A DNA stretch of 55,698 bases, counting the filler, from Platydemus manokwari (taxonomy: Eukaryota), in the NCBI GenBank assembly GCA_037951405.1. It is 5 parts of 5 records of this genome, joined end to end, with 100 filler letters (N's around TTAATTAATTAA, not from the genome) between each part and the next. Parts side by side here need not be neighbours in the genome. Positions count along the whole stretch, not along the records: positions 10,386 to 20,481 come from JBBMOY011170100.1; 4 more parts are not named here. One strand, written 5' to 3'. The notes beneath the pieces were generated by a model that saw only the letters and a list, made by a program, of their open reading frames with translations, had not been told where the DNA came from and made no database searches. A program made the position numbers and the translations under genes. Below are positions 10,386 to 20,481 of the stretch, in pieces (the stretch's first letter is position 1; the number at the start of each line of letters is the position of its first letter).

Positions 10386-10474
10386 TGCAGTAGTTTAATG
10401 CGAATATTTTTCGCATCAGTAATTTTTGAACATTCTCTGGGACTTATATATCTCCGCAGTATAGAAAGGGTTAA
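10386..10474. mobile_element. Possible piggyBac-type element end
   Basis: Ends ...GCAGTATAGAAAGGG followed by TTAA, the piggyBac terminus and target motif; the rest is lost in the gap. Confidence 0.4.
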
Positions 10475-10483
10475 TATTTGTAA

Positions 10484-11308
10484 TGTCATGAGAGAAATGG
10501 ATTCATTAGTCTGCTGTTGAATCTACAGAAAGTGCTTTGAGAATATACCAACATAATATTTTGGAACCCTAAAAGATCAATGACAGCCTTCAGTAAACTT
10601 TTGATTCTTCATTTTGTAAAAAAAAATAACGAATGAGCTCCCTTAAGCTGTCAGCCAAGGTTTCCCTGGTGCCTGTGATGGGCAGCCAGAGCGTATAAAC
10701 TTTTCTTTTGTTATTTAAATCTTATTTATGTGCTTGTATTACATTGTTCATATAATCTATTTTAAACATTAATTTTTGCTTGTGTTGAGTGAGACTAAAT
10801 CTTGCAAAAGAAAATCGGATTTGCATCTCGGAACTCTTGTTTAAGCACTTTAAACATTTGCATGCCTACGCGATCATACAAGGATAACACTCAACCAATT
10901 ACAGCGGAGTCAGATGGAAAAAGACAAGTGGAAAAAGGGATTGACCAATCTCACACATGCAAGAACCAATAAGTCCAACAGAAACAGAAAAGTAAAGATC
11001 GAATCAAAATGTGATACAAACTTGACTCAAATAATTACATACATATTTCGAGTACAAATACCGATGTAAAGATCGCCAACTACCATTTGGAAGCGAATTT
11101 TTGGTTACGTGTCGAGACATTGTATAGAACGCATGTAGTTTGAAGTGAAGTTTCTATTGTAAATGTGTAATACCTTTGATTTCTGGAGTCAGTAATAATT
11201 GGGTTATTCAGAATCAGATCCCAGCACTTGTTTGGACCTTGTGTTTCCGATCAAACTTTCGAGAAAATAATACATCTAATAAAAATACGTTTTAAGGTTA
11301 CCATGACA
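10484..11308. repeat. LTR-like segment
   Basis: Bounded by inverted TGTCATG...CATGACA; repeated CCAAT boxes at ~10895-10970; higher GC; no clear TSD. Confidence 0.35.
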
Positions 11309-11843
11309 ACATTTGCACTGTTGCTTCATGAATTGGATTCCAAATTTTTAATAGAGAGCATTTTGTTTTTCATATACAAATTTTAAAATGTGATGTATAA
11401 ATTTTTTGAAACAAAATCAACAATTCAGTTCTTTATGAGATTACTTATAATTATAACATCTCATACTTTGATCATCTATCCAGAAATTTTCAACTATTAA
11501 TTGCACATCTTTTTATAAAAAGTTAATAAACCTTTTCATCGTTAGTATGTAAATTAATATCAAACGAATACAAATTTCTTAAACCTTTCTACTTTAGAAA
11601 ATGAAAATTTCGATTGATTTCATACAAACGCGAAATTTGATTCTAAAACACCATAGCAACTAGATTATTGTAACATTCTTAAGTCTAATATTTTTATGTG
11701 CAAGTTGATCGTTTATTCTGATATTCATTAATCATTGCCTTGACTCATTTCCTAATTGGCTCTATTGGCAGTATTTTTGGAAAATATAAAACGATTGTCT
11801 TTCAGTATCAGTTGACTAAAAATAAATTCAAAATTCTATTTCG

Positions 11844-13682
11844 ATGGCTTGGAAGATTCTAGGTTGTCTGATTTATATTGGATTTCAGTCAATTATGTTG
11901 TGTGAAACCAAACGAAGTAAATGTTATGATTGTCATAGCATTTGTTATGAAGCAACAAAGGGAATAGCTATTAACACAGCCAAAGCAATGAATTCCAGTT
12001 GTTTTGCCGATTGTTTGAATTTTCCATTTACACGTGACAATATGACATTGGCAATGGTTGATTGCTCGAAGCCTGGTGAAAAATGTTTTACATCCCATGC
12101 ATTAATGAAATTCAAGGTGAGTGGAATTTATTGATATTTCTTAAAAATTGAATCCTTAATCGTTAATAATAACATCACCATTTGTTTTATTCTAACCCAC
12201 TTTACGAGCTCAAATTTTTTCGCTACTCCTAGGGACCAAAATAAAAATAATAAAGCAAATGTTTTTAATAAATTTTTTTGTTTAACATCAAAACATTGAA
12301 ATATATTTGTATATTCTTGCATAAAGCATAACATCTTGAATCTATTTCGCTGATGGGTGGTCTCAGTGCTAATTCTAGACCTTAAAAATTTGATCGATAT
12401 TTTGTCTTAATATAGGGCAGTGTCGAAACTGATTTTTCACACAAATAAATAAAGGCAAAAGGAAAAAGAGAAAGTATGGTTAGTTCCGATAATAGTGGAT
12501 GTTTTGTTTTTAATCAATATGGTATCAAATAATTAGAATCTGAATAAAGTAGAATTCGATTTTATTATCTGCAGGGTATGCTGAATTTAACAAAAATCCA
12601 TTTTGATTGTCAGAGGCTATTGTATTTTAGAGAAATGTATAAGTTTAAGGAAAATGGATGGCTCCTATTTATTACATTAATTTGAGTTACAAAGACCAGG
12701 ATGCCATTAGAGCCATTATAAAATTTATCATAATTTCTTCGATAATAAATTATAAAGAAAAATACAAATGTTAATATAAATGTTAGTCGGAAGAAAATGT
12801 GAATTAAATTTGGAGTTTCATTTACTATCATAGATACTTGAGAAATTAGATATATTTGTTTAAATGCTGTAGAACTTTACACCAAATAACGAAGACTTGT
12901 TAATATTTCTTTGACCACTAATGATAATCCGGAAAACAGTAAATCGGATGCATGGTCTTCTCTTTTAATCAAGTATCACTTTATAAAAGCTCTTCAAACT
13001 AAAGCAAATTATATAAGCTATTAGCAATTAAATATACGATTTGTCATGTGATTTAATAGATGAAGTTTGAATTATGCTATTTTTATCCGTTTTGGCACAT
13101 ATCTTCAATTTTACTATTGGAATGCAGCTTTTTATACTTGATCCATTTAATACAATGGTTTTGATATGTATCTATTGCATAAAAAACAACTTAGCCTATG
13201 CAAAGTCATACAATGCATGTACGTCTTTCTGATATCTTTTTATTTATAAAACCTATTAACCACCAATTGTACCGCCCACAAAGTATCACAATCATTTTCA
13301 ATCAAAACAAATACCAAACATGGAGAACATTAATAATATGCGATTTAACATGAACAATTTTCTTTAATTCTAGATCTTGACAGATGGAAGTTTTATTACT
13401 ATGAGATATATATTACGAGGTTGTACACCGAACTGTCCGATTCAGGTTTGTGATTTTTCAAAATTACGATCATGCAAATTTGCACCGGAAGTGGTAAATT
13501 TCTTGGAGAAAAAGATTTTGGCGGAGAAAGAGCAACTCGAAAAGCGAATTTACAGGAATGTGTTACAAGAAAATTTGATAGATTATGGGATGGGTGGAGA
13601 AATGAAGTGCTGTAAGACAGATGGTTGTAACACTGATAGAGATACAACATATGCCCATAAGTATATTCGAGATGAACTTTGA
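11844..13682 (+). CDS. Ly6/uPAR (three-finger, LU-domain)-like secretory protein, 193 aa, with C-terminal RDEL; exons 11844-12116 and 13374-13682
   Basis: Signal peptide MAWKILGCLIYIGFQSIMLC; KCYDC near the N-terminus, LRGC, and the terminal CCKTDGCN LU signature. Phase-0 intron from GTGAGT (12117) to TTCTAG (13373) joins the two ORFs in frame; AATAAA at ~13713. Confidence 0.85.
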
Positions 13683-15302
13683 TGTCAAATTGTAAAAAAA
13701 TTTTACATCACTAATAAAATAAATTTAATCCGGTTATTTGTTTTTTGTATATTTCTCAGCTATTAATGATCTAACTTGATTGGAAAATTAATTTTATAAT
13801 CAGCGTTGTATTTAAAAATATTAGTTAATGTGTAATTTAAACATTATGATATAACGATGGACGTCATTTGAAAACAAATAGAGATTTACAGTTATTTTGT
13901 CTTCAGGTGTATTATTTAACTAGATATTTATTTATTTATCTTAAATAAAATTACTCTTATTCGAATAAAACTCAGAAGTAGGATTACTTGCGAGTATATT
14001 TGTTTTAAGTGTACTTCCAGTACATCTCTTTTCATAAGCCAGAGATGTTTAGAATGAGATGTATGATAATGACAGCTGTAGAACCAAAAAAAGTACACAA
14101 AATCAAAACCTTTAAATATTACAAATAAAAATCCTAAGCTGAAAAACCGAAAACAAATAATTTCATTTTGTTTCAAAACGAAAATTATAAAACAAATAAT
14201 AAAGCAAGACAAATTATATTTTTGAATTACTTAAATGAAAACAATTGTAAAAATTATGAGAAGAGAAATTATTCTAAATCGATAATTTCAAATCGTTATC
14301 TTGATGTCGTCCATATTGGGCAGGACAAGCAATTGCTACAAAATAAAATAAAACTATTTCGCACATTTGACGGAATATTATTTTATTGTTAACCTGCAAT
14401 TCTGACATCACTTTTTTCTGGATCCAATCCGTTATTTTAGAAAAATTCAGTTGGCGATCGCCAATTTTTGGAATTGTCGATATTCGTACAGTTGGCATCG
14501 GTCTCAATCCATACCAGATTCGATCAGATGGTGGTCGGGGAAAATGAATGACCAGAATTCCATCAAAATGATGAATGTCTAACTAATTTATATAAATCAA
14601 GGCGATTATTATAATAACTATAGAAGTATAAAATAAAAGTATAACATAAAACGTAGCAATATTATAAAATTTAAATATCAATAAAGCCTTCAGTAAGATA
14701 ATGAACGTACATAATAATCAATCAGTATTAATGTTATTATTTGATATGAACAGACAATAATAACAACGGTTGTAAGGGAGATACGTAAATGAGATTAGTG
14801 ATTGCGCAACTATCAGTTGCTACTAACCATTTAACCTCCCATGATCTGATTACATCATCAGAAATGTGATGATATATAACGTTCTAATTGTTCTAAATAA
14901 ATGTTCCCTTATTAGAAAGTCTTATGATTAACAATATTCATCACGAATATTTATAGATTTTACTGCTAATGAATAATGAGTGTTGCCTATGATTAAAAGC
15001 CTAGAGTTCGGTTGGTTAAACGTGTTATGAACAAAATATAAATAGTTCTTGCTAGCTACCGCTATTTCATAAATTATGAATCGAGAACGAGTCCTAGAAA
15101 TTCATATGGTAAAGCTTATTTAATCAAAATAGTCAAATTAAATTGACCATTTATCTATTTTAATATCGATATAGTTTCTATTTAAGATGATCATTTCAAT
15201 GTTAAGTGATTTCAAAATCTTCGCAGTACTAAAAGTTTCATTTAAAATATTATCAAATCAATGATAAATCAATAAATAAAAATTGTGTTATTTAACTTTT
15301 AG

Positions 15303-17762
15303 GTCGCTCAATCTATTCATCTGATCAAAACCCGAGAAAGTAAATTGTCTTTCGAGACAGCAAAAGGATTATTTGGTTCAAAGGTAATTGAAAAAGACCC
15401 ATTTCTTCAAGGTGAGTAAAATTAAAATTGCTTAATTGTTCTTTTTTGAAGAACTTTTTTGCTTAATATATAGAATTATTTTTCTGGAAATATATTTAAA
15501 ATATATTTATAATGTTCGGACTACGTTTGATGGTTAATTTAATCATATATGATCCTTCATTAAAGTAGTTCATTGTTTAGATAATCTACATATACACCAA
15601 AGTCACTGTAAACAACTTAACATCGATTTGATTATCAAAAACAATTATCAGCTCTTGTAATTTTATTCAAATTTTTCATTTCCACTAATATTGTTTTCGA
15701 AATATCTTACTACTGTGACCAAATATTATCGGGACTTATCAATTTAAAACTTACTGGTTTATCGATTCGTCTTAATTTTTTTTAGATTGGCAATACTGTA
15801 TTACATCAATGTCAAATTTAATTGGCTAAAAAGTTACATTAGTCAATATCAAAGCAACTTTATTTTCGATTTTTACGATGTTTGATTTTGTTTAGTAGAA
15901 GTTGCATTAAATTTTGTTTGGAGAATAAAATTTTTATGTCTATGACCCAGAAACAACCAATCGAGCGAATTTAGTATCAAAAGAAATTTAACGTCGAAAA
16001 AATCATATTAATTTCGTGTTAACAGTTTTCCTCGATTATGGCGCTGTTGTGCATTATGAATTTCTTCTATCTACCAAAACTCTTAACAGGGAACTTTATT
16101 TTGACCTTATGCGTCATTACTTGAGGATATTTGCCTCAAGAATCCGGGTTTAAGAGCAGATAACCCTTGGTTTTTACGTTACTATAATATACCGGCTCAC
16201 AATGCATTGGTTCTTTGAGACATTTTCATCATAACTTAATTCTTTTGGTTCCATAACTACCATATTCCGCTGGTTTGCACCGTTTGACTTCTGTTTATTC
16301 AATAAACTACAAAATGATCCGAGGCACAGTTTGACAAGACTGAGGATATGAAAACCGAATTGAAGAAGATATCAGAGGTCATTCAAAAAATAAACTTTAT
16401 AATTTTTTCGAGAACACGAATAAACGTTGGCACAAATAAATTGGGTTGGAGGATGATTAATTTGAAGACCCTTAAAATTGATTCTGAAGAATTAATAAAG
16501 ATTTTTCATTTATTACAAAATTCTTGGCCATATTTGATCATAGAGGTATATAATCAATTTTATTTAAGTTCATCAAAAATATCGTTAATGTTTCTTGAGA
16601 TTTTCCTTATAAAATCTTTTGTTATGATTGGAATGTACATAAAAACTAGAATTATTTTTCTGCTAACTTCCATTTTTGATCATCTCGTTATTGGAAAATG
16701 TGCAATATGCCGTTAAGGTTAATCAATTCAAATTATCTTCTATAGATTGTTATTTTGTTTGGAAGACATTGTTATGTTATGATGGTTTCTTGCTTGAACC
16801 ATTAAAAATATTTTTTAATTTTACTTTTCACTACAATATAAGATTTTAAGCTTGTCATTTAAAAATTCATTCATTCGTGGATTTTAACTCACTATCATTT
16901 CATGGAATTGAATTATCTTTTATCATAGAACAGGTAGTTATGTTAAGGGTATATATTGGAATATATTTGACAGATAATCGTTATGTTGTGACGTAAAAAA
17001 TCGGGTGAATATTTAATTAAATTCAAAGCAATCTTAAAGTCGATGATTGAAAGATTATCTCATCAACAAAAAAAGTAAATTTTGCACATGCTCATTGACT
17101 TAAAATTACCCTCATTTATATTCGCCTTTCTGTTATTTATAAAAATCAAAATGATATATTTTTCTATGCTAAATATTTTTATCAGGAAGTTTTTTAATCC
17201 ATAAACGAAAATCCATAGAAATATTTTTTCTTTCGTACTTTTCAATGTTTATGATTTCTTAATTGTATTTACATCTTGTCAACGTTTGTAGAGGAATAAA
17301 GAATAATGAATTACCAGCCTAATGGATATATTTTATCTACTTTAAAAATAATACTGTCTCTATTCATTAAGTACACCATATAAATAATCCCAATGGGCCC
17401 CGAGCCGCCAGTTTTGGACTATCTAGTGATTATTCATTGATTTAGAGACTGCTTGATAATGGAAATTACTGATATGGTTTCTTATCTCAAATATATCTTT
17501 AATAAATAGTTTTAGTTTCGATTTTAATTTGTATCTATAATAATAATATTTTAAGCTATTTTAATAATATTTAGGACCAATCATAAGTTTGGAATATTTT
17601 GGATCTTCACAAATCAATGATTTCGTTGATACATTCATTACAAATCACTTTCCTGGTGGAAATTCGAAACATTTGATTTACGTATCACCCGATATTGAAA
17701 CATGTAAAAGTCAAATCGATTTAATAAACAACATAACAAATATGGGAATGAACACATCTTGA
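15303..17762 (+). CDS. RP2: RP2/XRP2 (ARL3 GAP) orthologue, last two exons (NDK-like C-terminal domain); exons 15303-15411 and 17575-17762
   Basis: Spliced translation VAQSIHLIKTRESKLSFETAKGLFGSKVIEKDPFLQ-GPIISLEYFG...LIYVSPDIETCKSQIDLINNITNMGMNTS* resembles the RP2 C-terminus as recalled (FLVQTKEVSM..DAQRVF..GPVIALEFNG..MFVSES..DVDSFYNFADIQMGI). Canonical splice sites with matching phase 1. Not captured by the ORF track. Confidence 0.82.
15900..16550 (+). mobile_element. Decayed mariner transposase fragment with 3' end, inside the RP2 intron
   Basis: Broken motifs YDPET, TVFLDYGAVVHYEFL, YNIPAH (HDNAPAH-like), PYSAGL..FDFCLFNKL (YSPDLAP-like) and KRWHK; ends TTTGATCATAGAGG-TA. Confidence 0.85.
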
Positions 17763-18772
17763 TAGAATATATCCAAAACTGTAATCTATGTTCATTGTTA
17801 GTTTATAGAAGTGGTTTGTTGTGTTATTTTCATTTTTTTTTATAAATTTATCAATGTTTGTAAAACAGAATCGTCCGTCTTGTGATTTACTTTAATTGAT
17901 TTATTCTATTTATTTAAAACCGTTATTGTTTGAAAGCATTGAAAAGTTGTCAATGATGAATAGTAATCTTATGAATACATTGACTACTGATTACAAAAGG
18001 CTTTCTGGTCAAATGTGGACAGAGTTGTTTAAAATAAGAATTTAAAGTTATTTGAGATATAAAATTAGAATATAAAAATTCATTGATTATGGACACACTA
18101 ATCGTACGAATGTATCAATTAAATGCACATGGTTAGCATTTGGAAATCTTGTTACCACATATTGTGTTATATAAAATTATCTGAAGTTGTAATTATTTGG
18201 TTCTTACGATGATTCAACAGCTTGAATTCGATGAAAAACTTATCTTTTATTATTATCAACATTTTGATTATTAAAATTTACAATATCAGCATCGTAACTA
18301 CTTTTATTACCAATAAACGTATTTGAAAATTGTAATAATCTCAAAATAATAATAAATTATATTAATAATTTTATAATATTAACAAATTCCTTAAAAACAA
18401 TCATTTAAATATTTAGCTTGAGGTTTGTTTTAATGGTTCGCGGAACAGATATTAAAATCTGTAAAATATAACACATGTTGTGAGATTAATTAATGTTATA
18501 ATCTGATTTAAGCAATATAGGTTTATTATGAAAGTATTTGAAAGATATCATCTGGTTAACGCATAACAAACTTTTTTATGTCATAACGTAATGAATAAAC
18601 TAACTTTCTTGCGCACTAGATCATATAAAAATGGCAGCGCATTATTATTTTTAGTTATTTGTCGATTGTTTAAAATCTACTGAAGAATTGTTTGACAGTA
18701 AATTAAATAATCTTATAAAAATATTTATTTTCGTTAGAGAGATGGGATCCTAGGAGAAGAGTTTCTTATCAA

Positions 18773-19317
18773 TGTTGGGTAGATTATAAATGAATCAAAA
18801 GGGTTACATCAACCAAGGAAATAACCCTGAAAAGAGTCGACACACAGAGATCCGATAAGCACATTGACCGTCAGCCAATCAGATTCGTTTTAATATTAAT
18901 CCATATTTAGAAGATAAGTATCTTTAGGTACATAGCTACAAATGACAGATAATTCAAATATTTGCCAATAAATAGCATAAGAGATACGAAGAAAATTTCA
19001 AGGAAACCGATCTACGAACAAATTCAGCAAATAGATAACGAAAATCCGTGACATCAGGCAGGTCTATAAAAGAGATTGAGTTCCATGAATAACTGTAAAT
19101 ATTTTTGGTCGGTAACTTGGGTATTAATCTTAATTTTGTGTGATTTTCAGTAACAAGTCTTTTTGATTACTTTCTATTCTGTTTTTGACTTTTGGGTGCT
19201 GACCCAACTTGTGTGATAAACTATCTTTGATTATAAAGCGATTTAATTGTAGTTTTCGTGATTGTAATATTTTGGATAATATAATTTTCATACCTAATTG
19301 TTGATTGATACCCAACA
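18773..19317 (+). repeat. Solo LTR (545 bp)
   Basis: Perfect 9-bp terminal inverted repeat TGTTGGGTA...TACCCAACA; internal CCAAT (~18875), TATAAAA (~19064) and T-rich U5-like tail; flanks TCAA/ACAA match a 4-bp TSD with one mismatch. Confidence 0.75.
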
Positions 19318-20408
19318 ACAATCATAGATCAGTGACAATTTTAATTATAAACCATGATTTTTCTGTAAAAAGTTATAGCATTGTTATTTTAATTTTTGTA
19401 AAAAGTTTTTTGTTATTTTCAATGTATATTGTTATTTTATTAAGAAATTCAGGTAATACATTTTATTTTTATCCTGCGTTAATTTTATTGGATAAGTGTT
19501 TTCATCAAATGGAATATATATTATTTTATTGAAAGCCCCTTTGGAATGAAATGATGGATTTTAATTAATAATTTTAATATTAATCCCAGACCTATTAAAT
19601 TCCCTATTAAATAATCAAACCGATATGTATGTCAACAATTTAGAAGAATGCATGAACAACAAGTACAAACGAATAAATATAGAATAATTTCAACAATATT
19701 TTTGACAACCAATTTAATAAATGAGATTAATACTAAGTAAAGTCAAGGAATTTTCAGAAAATGAAATCGATATTTATCAAATGCAATCAAATAAAATTTA
19801 ATGTTTAAAGGTTCTTGCAACACAATATACACATTTATAAACAAATCAAGACTTAGTTCGGAAAACACTACTACTATTCACCAGCATGATTTTTCAATTT
19901 TAATTGTGCCAATTGTCGTTATTTGTAAAACTGGCGTATTTCAATAAAATGCCTCGTTTGACAATGAAAGTTGCTATCATTGTCTCACCAGCTATAGTTA
20001 ATTCGGGTAACCAGCGAGTCCAGTAAATCTTTCATGCAAACCTTTAATTTTCAAACTTTCTATATTCCATATTTATTCGAGTCTTCGCATCATCAATTCA
20101 ACCCAAATAAAAAGGAAGACAGTACAAGTCTTAATCTTTTTGGAATTTAATTTCGTGATATGAATTGCGAAGGAATTGTCAATTATCAATTAACATAACA
20201 AAGCTTGTACAGAATATTTGACATCTTTCTAATTTTAATCTCTTCCACCCATCTTTTTTACTTCATAGTTAGGTGCCACTAGTTTAATATCTTTATTAAA
20301 TAACATCTTTATATGAAAAATCATCAACATTACACATTATTATTCCAATTTTTAATTGTTTTATTGTACAATTTGTTTCTCAAATTCATACAAGTTGAAT
20401 ATACTATA

Positions 20409-20481
20409 CCAGGTGTGTCGGTAATTCCTTTCCGGTTTTTTCGCTAAACAAAAAAAAACAAAACACAAACAAAACAAAATT
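20409..20481. mobile_element. Mariner-like TIR truncated by the gap
   Basis: TA followed by CCAGGTGTGTCGGTAATTCCTTTCCGGTTTTT, typical of mariner termini. Confidence 0.55.

Follow-up and report, generated by a model that had tools for sequence, protein, structure and literature searches.

Proteins built on the LU (Ly6/uPAR, three-finger) domain are known as glycosylphosphatidylinositol (GPI)-anchored, secreted, or receptor-ectodomain modules at the cell surface. The soluble residents of the endoplasmic reticulum (ER) that are retrieved by the KDEL receptor include the PDI family, BiP, ERp44 (which carries RDEL), Canopy/Seele, MANF, and AGR2, and no three-finger fold was found among the KDEL-bearing residents in the literature searched. 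The LU domain is defined by 8–10 cysteines in stereotyped positions within approximately 70–100 residues (PMC4476152). Evidence for LU proteins that act earlier than the cell surface is indirect; examples are lynx1, which associates in the ER with dimers of nicotinic acetylcholine receptor subunits and thereby biases receptor assembly (PMC6502960), and three Ly6 proteins of insects, Boudin, Coiled, and Crooked, which are reported to be needed for the organization of septate junctions (PMC3058042, PMC5627947). The literature searched, the coverage of which was incomplete, contained no account of a natural LU protein that ends in a KDEL-type signal, and an ER retention signal is an unusual address for an LU-like protein. 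Here we describe a two-exon gene at positions 11844–13682 of a 55,698-nucleotide stretch of joined genomic DNA ("the window") from Platydemus manokwari (GenBank assembly GCA_037951405.1), in a piece spanning 10386–20481 (JBBMOY011170100.1), the product of which is likely to be a soluble, ER-lumenal LU-like protein that enters the secretory pathway and is retrieved by the KDEL receptor.

The gene lies on the plus strand. Exon 1 (11844–12116) comprises 91 codons beginning with the ATG at 11844 and ends in AAG, directly followed by the GTGAGT of the intron, while exon 2 (13374–13682) comprises 102 codons plus a TGA stop. The intervening intron (12117–13373) is a phase-0 GT-AG intron of 1257 nucleotides that ends in TAG (acceptor end ttctttaattctAG), and joining of the two exons gives a product of 193 amino acids. 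Without splicing, the frame of exon 1 runs only five codons into the intron before reaching a stop, and a stop codon immediately precedes exon 2 in frame. Exon 1 encodes the signal peptide and the N-terminal half of a cysteine-rich domain (Cys27, 30, 34, 53, 57, 74, and 81), and exon 2 encodes, in order, the end of loop 2, an RGCxxxC motif, an extra cysteine pair, a helical insert, a CCxxxxCN motif, and the tail.

Relatives of this protein were sought in very large protein collections. An exhaustive HMMER search with exon 2 as the query against 1.84 billion representatives identified only two true relatives, P0001 (94 amino acids, 61% identity to exon 2, E 7.5e-34) and P0002 (183 amino acids, 43% identity to exon 2, E 3.3e-15); two other rows, an immunoglobulin-repeat protein and a 1963-residue protein, both with E ~1e-4, were rejected as spurious. 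P0005, which is 79% identical to P0002, was gained by a word search with P0002, and P0006 was gained by a family profile search. P0001 and P0006 are the two exons of one gene on the metagenome contig L003 (exon 1, 1045–1320; a 62-nucleotide intron, GTACGT...TAG, 1321–1382; exon 2, 1383–1694), and the relatives outside P. manokwari comprise three genes, namely the L003 gene (P0006 plus P0001), P0002, and P0005. The L003 intron occupies exactly the position of the P. manokwari intron, in phase 0, and the uninterrupted open reading frames of P0002 and P0005, on contigs L001 and L002, are colinear across the same junction. Exon 1 of the window shares 40% identity with exon 1 of L003 and also aligns with residues 1–85 of P0002 and P0005. 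The splice model is therefore supported by comparison with the relatives, and the 12116/13374 junction and 193-residue product proposed in a preliminary description made from the DNA alone are upheld. The two-exon gene is real, and its structure and conservation are established.

The C-terminus is the feature that sets this protein apart. The P. manokwari protein ends in AHKYIRDEL-stop and all three relatives end in AH[HT]YIKDEL-stop. The YIRDEL end closes with the codons CGA GAT GAA CTT TGA at 13668–13682, wherein RDEL (13668–13679, plus strand) forms the extreme C-terminus and directly adjoins the stop (13680–13682). When the C-terminal halves of all four proteins are aligned, the tail shows no variation at its A, H, Y, I, D, E, and L and only K or R at the −4 position, such that the window protein reads RDEL-TGA and the relatives (P0001 of L003, P0002, and P0005) read KDEL-stop. 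The stop codons themselves vary (TGA in the window and L001, TAA in L002, TAG in L003), and no part of the tail is better conserved across this saturated divergence than its last nine residues, which include the xDEL. With KDEL-stop at the end of all three relatives and an invariant AHxYI before it, the terminal RDEL has the appearance of a genuine retrieval signal under selection. The preliminary description had asked whether orthologues keep a terminal [KRH]DEL, and three of three relatives, ending YIKDEL-stop, do so. It had also treated RDEL as a functional KDEL-receptor motif, which agrees with the published structure of the RDEL-bound receptor, in which RDEL is a structurally characterized ligand; KDEL and RDEL are both bona fide ligands (PMC8248988).

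Hydropathy analysis is consistent with a soluble protein that enters the ER. The sole hydrophobic segment of the P. manokwari protein is at its N-terminus (15-residue Kyte-Doolittle maximum of 2.0 at residue 5, and at most 0.7 elsewhere), and corresponds to a predicted signal peptide of approximately residues 1–22 (11844–11909, plus strand), which is assigned by hydropathy only and the cleavage site of which is approximate. All four proteins have one such N-terminal stretch, located at the same place in the three relatives, with no other 15-residue segment above 1.1 on the Kyte-Doolittle scale. The last 20 residues of the window protein are polar (mean Kyte-Doolittle −1.48), and the protein therefore has no GPI-type hydrophobic tail. 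GPI anchoring or free secretion is common among LU proteins without defining them, and here the C-terminal hydrophobic GPI signal is replaced by a tail ending in RDEL; hydropathy detects no hydrophobic C-terminal stretch in any of the four proteins. Hydropathy thus shows the protein to have neither a GPI signal nor a transmembrane segment, in keeping with the preliminary description, which had noted a signal peptide and no GPI tail. N-glycosylation sequons are present in exon 1 of the window at N50 and N66, and sequons are kept just before or after the Cys53–Cys57 pair in all species (N50 in the window, N51 in L003, and N59/N60 in L001 and L002), as would fit a lumenal protein.

The second defining feature is the cysteine frame. 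Fourteen cysteines following the signal peptide are kept in all four species; ten of them occupy the canonical LU positions, and the other four form an extra pair in loop 1 and another in loop 3. The canonical positions in the window protein read C27-x2-C30 ... C74-x6-C81 ... C108-x3-C112 ... C170-C171-x4-C176-N177, with a third cysteine three residues after the CxxC. The C74-x6-C81 element opens loop 2 and is followed by a long predicted hairpin that is closed by RGC-x3-C, and the frame ends with CC-x4-CN. The extra pairs are Cys53 and Cys57, in an enlarged loop 1, and Cys117 and Cys125, at the start of loop 3. The individual motifs (KCYDC containing Cys27 and Cys30, RGCTPNC, KCCKTDGCN, and the YIRDEL-stop) include all of those listed in the preliminary description (CxxC, RGC, CCxxxxCN, extra cysteines, and RDEL-stop), each as placed there. 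The CCKTDGCN motif (13608–13631, plus strand) is the CCxxxxCN C-terminal signature of LU/three-finger proteins, and its CC, C, and N do not vary among the four sequences. If cleavage after Cys19 is assumed for P0002 and P0005, their first cysteine pair falls at approximately mature positions 3 and 6 (TxCYKC); the mature chain of CD59 begins LQCYNC. Taken together, the order and spacing of the cysteines fit a ten-cysteine LU frame. The mature L003 orthologue has 16 cysteines instead of 14, owing to two additional ones in loop 1 (VCC... and ...ELC), which may form one more loop disulfide.

Selection on the gene was examined at two depths of divergence. Between the window and L003, compared exon by exon, the proportion of synonymous differences (pS) is 0.72 and 0.82, which is saturated, and the proportion of non-synonymous differences (pN) is 0.41 and 0.25; since pN is far below the saturated pS, this comparison indicates long-term purifying selection. 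L001 and L002 come from two close species with flanking DNA that is 92% and 87% identical. Between L001:391–942 and L002:280–831, 59 of 552 coding positions differ, divided almost evenly among the codon positions (18/16/25), and the 13 synonymous and 45 non-synonymous changes give a ratio of non-synonymous to synonymous rates (dN/dS) of ~0.9, with small counts and a wide confidence interval. The coding sequence of this pair has diverged as much as its flanks, and it contains no indel or stop, compared with 20 gap openings in the flanks, while all cysteines and the AHHYIKDEL tail are unchanged. This pattern suggests that the protein's partner is evolving fast or that constraint has been relaxed in that lineage. 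The comparisons describe a protein that combines a conserved scaffold with fast-evolving loops, and loops that vary freely on an unchanging scaffold typify three-finger toxins as well as LU proteins with reproductive or immune roles.

Several results weigh against an ER-lumenal LU-like protein and need to be set beside the cysteine frame and the tail. The dN/dS of ~0.9 between L001 and L002 would be unexpected for a conserved housekeeping ER chaperone, and the domain has roughly double the length that is usual for LU proteins. Pfam searches with both window exons and the orthologues returned nothing above threshold: none of the LU-type models (UPAR_LY6, Toxin_TOLIP, QVR, Activin_recp) reached its threshold, such that LU membership is not recovered by profile, and the only signal was a Toxin_cobra-type match over 11 residues around the CCxxxxCN (E 0.064; 13.9 bits, where the cut-off is 25.3). 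Searches of PDB sequences with each exon and with the family profile gave chance matches only (ferritin, haemagglutinin, viral polymerase). AlphaFold2 was run on the orthologues with six-row family alignments and gave poor models for both full-length P0002 (predicted local distance difference test, pLDDT, 42; predicted template modeling score, pTM, 0.30) and mature P0005, residues 20–183 (pLDDT 49.5; pTM 0.36). Structural scores obtained with the P0005 model are also low. In an exhaustive structure-only comparison of P0005:20–183 with 48,161 PDB cluster representatives using VIA-align, every Z was at most 5.2, below the tool's own caution for noise, including the leading matches to TEX101 (Z 5.2, 90 residues), CD177 (4.7, 4.5), and GPIHBP1 and PSCA (3.9). 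Foldseek found no match in the PDB at E ≤0.001. Its E-values (≥0.39), the template modeling (TM) scores of the structural matches (≤0.46), and the Z values of VIA-align all fall where the tools warn that matches are possible without homology.

What the structural comparisons do offer is consistency in the class of fold that they return. Following the four leading proteins, the VIA-align matches are an unrelated Streptococcus protein (3.8), then C4.4A, Lynx2, and LYPD6B, and lower down snake toxins, Lynx1, Prod1, SLURP-1, SLURP-2, CD59, uPAR, and the ectodomains of activin, BMP, and TGF-beta receptors, such that three-finger folds account for 29 of the 50 rows listed. These three-finger matches span the model from residue 1 to residues 144–164, that is, from the first cysteine to the CCxxxxCN or slightly past it. 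Approximately 10 of 50 weak Foldseek rows are likewise three-finger proteins, among them toxin alpha, GPIHBP1, candoxin, TEX101, C4.4A, and erabutoxin. A search of the ESM Atlas by shape returned UPAR_LY6 and Activin_recp rows at low scores, and a search by features returned an ecTbetaR2 row, with all scores ≤0.81 and to be read as leads only. From its N-terminus, the P0005 model runs through a strand, a helix, a second strand, a long hairpin, two helices, and a further strand, and closes with a short helix in the C-terminal tail. A charged insert of approximately 35 residues between the loop-3 cysteines and the CC motif (13479–13583 in the window, plus strand) is predicted to be helical, and is modeled as helix at residues 121–146 in the P0002 model and 102–127 in that of mature P0005, both at low confidence. 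CD59 also has a short helix in loop 3.

The LU profiles are known to be insensitive, and therefore the missed Pfam match lowers the claim of LU membership without excluding it. The three-finger claim of the preliminary description thus holds in part: the full cysteine frame and the majority of VIA-align rows listed agree with it, while the Pfam thresholds and the low-confidence models do not. The same is true of the AlphaFold and Foldseek check that it proposed, which was run on the orthologues and yielded pLDDT values of 42–50 and no Foldseek match at E ≤0.001, along with weak rows that include three-finger proteins. On balance, an LU/three-finger fold is probable.

A different explanation for much of the same evidence is that the protein is retained in the ER and rich in cysteine, and adopts a novel disulfide-rich fold of mixed beta and helical structure, sharing the CxxC and CCxxxxCN with LU proteins by chance. 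The lack of any Pfam or PDB sequence match and the low confidence of the AlphaFold models are what such a protein would give, as are structural scores that lie wholly in the range the tool calls possibly meaningless, and a chain of ~150 residues with 14 cysteines and two predicted helices exceeds the ~70–100 residues and 8–10 cysteines of LU proteins (PMC4476152). On the other hand, all ten canonical LU cysteines find a place in the right order and at plausible spacings, and the four that remain form two in-loop pairs; moreover, the lead taken by one fold class among 48,161 chains is not expected of a random mixed fold. A chance resemblance of this kind is consequently regarded as rather unlikely, while deserving real weight. 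A second explanation accepts the LU-like fold and places the protein outside the cell, as an exported product of, for example, gland, reproductive, or immune tissue in which the xDEL only slows export or works in some cells. Some KDEL-type proteins, including AGR2 and PDIA1, do exit the cell (PMC10183570, PMC11342103), and a dN/dS of ~0.9 between two close species, with the cysteine scaffold and frame conserved, is compatible with a secreted product. The clear purifying selection between the window and L003 argues the other way, as does the conservation of the last nine residues above the rest of the tail, which implies selection on the retrieval signal itself, and export as the normal fate of this protein is considered improbable.

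It is also conceivable that the conserved N-terminal CxxC (CYDC, CFEC, CYKC) is the active site of an ER redox protein, as this motif is present in all four sequences and PDI-family oxidoreductases carry an ER retrieval signal. A thioredoxin-like oxidoreductase was rejected, with no thioredoxin-like or other oxidoreductase Pfam family recovered even at E up to 10, no thioredoxin-fold chain among the structural matches listed by Foldseek and VIA-align, and the CxxC only 2–6 residues past the predicted cleavage site, too near the signal peptide to leave room for the strand that precedes it in a thioredoxin fold. In LU domains the CxxC is structural and its two cysteines belong to different disulfides, which also counts against catalysis at this motif; a redox role is very improbable. 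A saposin-like Canopy or MANF-type helper was likewise rejected, as neither the sequence nor the predicted fold is similar. Finally, the gene model could be wrong or the locus unexpressed, as a chance reading frame or pseudogene would be, and the window's own protein is indeed not in the protein collections searched. The conservation of both exons, the intron position, and the frame in L003, a pN far below pS, an open reading frame that is intact in four species, and the presence of consensus splice sites and of TATA and AATAAA signals led to rejection of a chance reading frame or pseudogene, and the probability left to an error of this kind is close to negligible.

An ER-lumenal LU-like protein thus remains the favored explanation, and its likenesses to described systems can be stated with some precision. 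Like CD59, Lynx1/Lynx2, PSCA, GPIHBP1, TEX101, and the insect proteins Boudin, Coiled, Crooked, and Quiver, the P. manokwari protein has a CxxC soon after the signal peptide and ten cysteines in a stereotyped order ending in CCxxxxCN, with a long predicted hairpin in the place of loop 2 and a helix in loop 3. LU proteins are also its top structural matches, and some of them act on partners in the secretory pathway (lynx1 in the ER; PMC6502960). In contrast to these proteins, it lacks a GPI signal or transmembrane segment and ends in a conserved [KR]DEL, its domain is ~150 rather than ~70–100 residues in length with 14 cysteines and helical inserts in loops 1 and 3, and it and its orthologues are missed by all Pfam LU models. 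With the KDEL-retrieved residents it shares a signal peptide, an extreme C-terminal [KR]DEL, and the lack of a membrane segment, and with Canopy and MANF, which are client-specific ER helpers, it shares small size and many disulfides, whereas in sequence and predicted fold it has no similarity to the thioredoxin-like, saposin-like, or Hsp70 families. Weak matches also occur to the ectodomains of TGF-beta, activin, and BMP receptors, three-finger variants of larger size that carry additional disulfides; they differ in being the N-terminal parts of transmembrane kinases, without the CCxxxxCN-plus-tail arrangement and without an xDEL.

The family is very rare, with four sequences among billions, and is limited to a few species. 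A word search with P0002 and the family alignment against 5.8 billion clusters returned only the four family sequences, and two scans of JGI metagenome contigs returned nothing new except a duplicate of L003 exon 1. A word-index search with exon 2 returned no candidates within its length window of 56–178 amino acids, which would exclude a 193-residue protein, and the window's own protein is absent from the 5.8-billion-cluster collection at 100–320 amino acids. Among the nearest ESM Atlas neighbors are unnamed mollusc protein clusters of 180, 144, and 223 amino acids (shape TM 0.46, features 0.77), which may be distantly related to the family. The four loci share an AT-rich composition, with a G+C content of 26–33%. 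The single coding intron is 1257 nucleotides in the window, 62 nucleotides in L003, and absent in L001 and L002, where an acceptor-like ttctttccAG just 5' of the ATG suggests genomic DNA with an intron in the 5' untranslated region. Three independent assemblies (ENA ERZ27256860, JGI 3300031718, and Logan SRR8558719; copies at L003:1045–1341, L004:710–1006, and L005:604–900) encode an identical exon 1 product for the L003 species, which has therefore been sampled repeatedly, in environmental or run data.

The surroundings of the P. manokwari gene are sparse. A possible TATA box (TATAAAA, 11785–11791, plus strand) read from the DNA lies 53 nucleotides 5' of the ATG, and a likely polyadenylation signal (AATAAA, 13713–13718, plus strand), read in the same way, lies 31 nucleotides 3' of the stop; the positions of both would fit a compact gene with exon 2 as its last exon. 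In the rest of the piece 10386–20481, the G+C content of which is ~23–34% in 500-nucleotide windows, there is no other convincing open reading frame, tRNA, Rfam family, paralogue, or notable repeat. The gene stands alone within the ~8 kb around it (10386–11800 and 13750–20481), where the longest stop-to-stop frame is 132 codons of low-complexity, AT-rich composition (16318–16713, plus strand).

These observations suggest the following mechanism. First, the signal peptide would bring the protein co-translationally into the ER lumen and then be cleaved. Next, the ~150-residue domain would fold oxidatively with seven disulfides as an enlarged LU domain, in which the ten canonical cysteines are joined by two further pairs, one in a loop 1 that is expanded and partly helical and one in loop 3, the latter loop bearing a long charged helix ahead of the CCxxxxCN. 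With no membrane anchor, the protein would then be bound by the KDEL receptor within the Golgi, through its RDEL (KDEL in the relatives) and returned to the ER, giving residence in the early secretory pathway; it is from this conserved signal that we infer ER residence. Its likeliest activity would be binding to a client, a membrane or secreted protein, at the client's lumenal domain while that client folds or is assembled. This role is the most economical guess by analogy, since LU domains are binding modules and lynx1 acts in the ER. The preliminary description drew the further inference of an ER chaperone or regulator of receptor assembly, with nicotinic receptors as the example; such a function may be suggested by analogy, and nothing here singles out nicotinic receptors as the client.

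More speculatively, the gene and its three relatives may found a natural class of KDEL-retrieved soluble three-finger proteins, in which an LU domain has moved from the cell surface to the ER lumen and binds a client particular to its lineage, whether receptor, channel subunit, or secreted product, controlling that client's assembly, retention, or neutralization before export. This proposal is tentative and at present doubtful; if it is true, the fast-evolving loops on a fixed 14-cysteine scaffold would track a fast-evolving client. The family would also illustrate that the LU scaffold can be enlarged, to 14 cysteines and with helical inserts, and yet escape every curated profile. If the assignment made here is correct, an LU-like protein addressed to the ER through a conserved KDEL-type signal would offer a clear example of a three-finger module serving as a lumenal factor, and would provide a direct handle on what three-finger modules bind during biogenesis.

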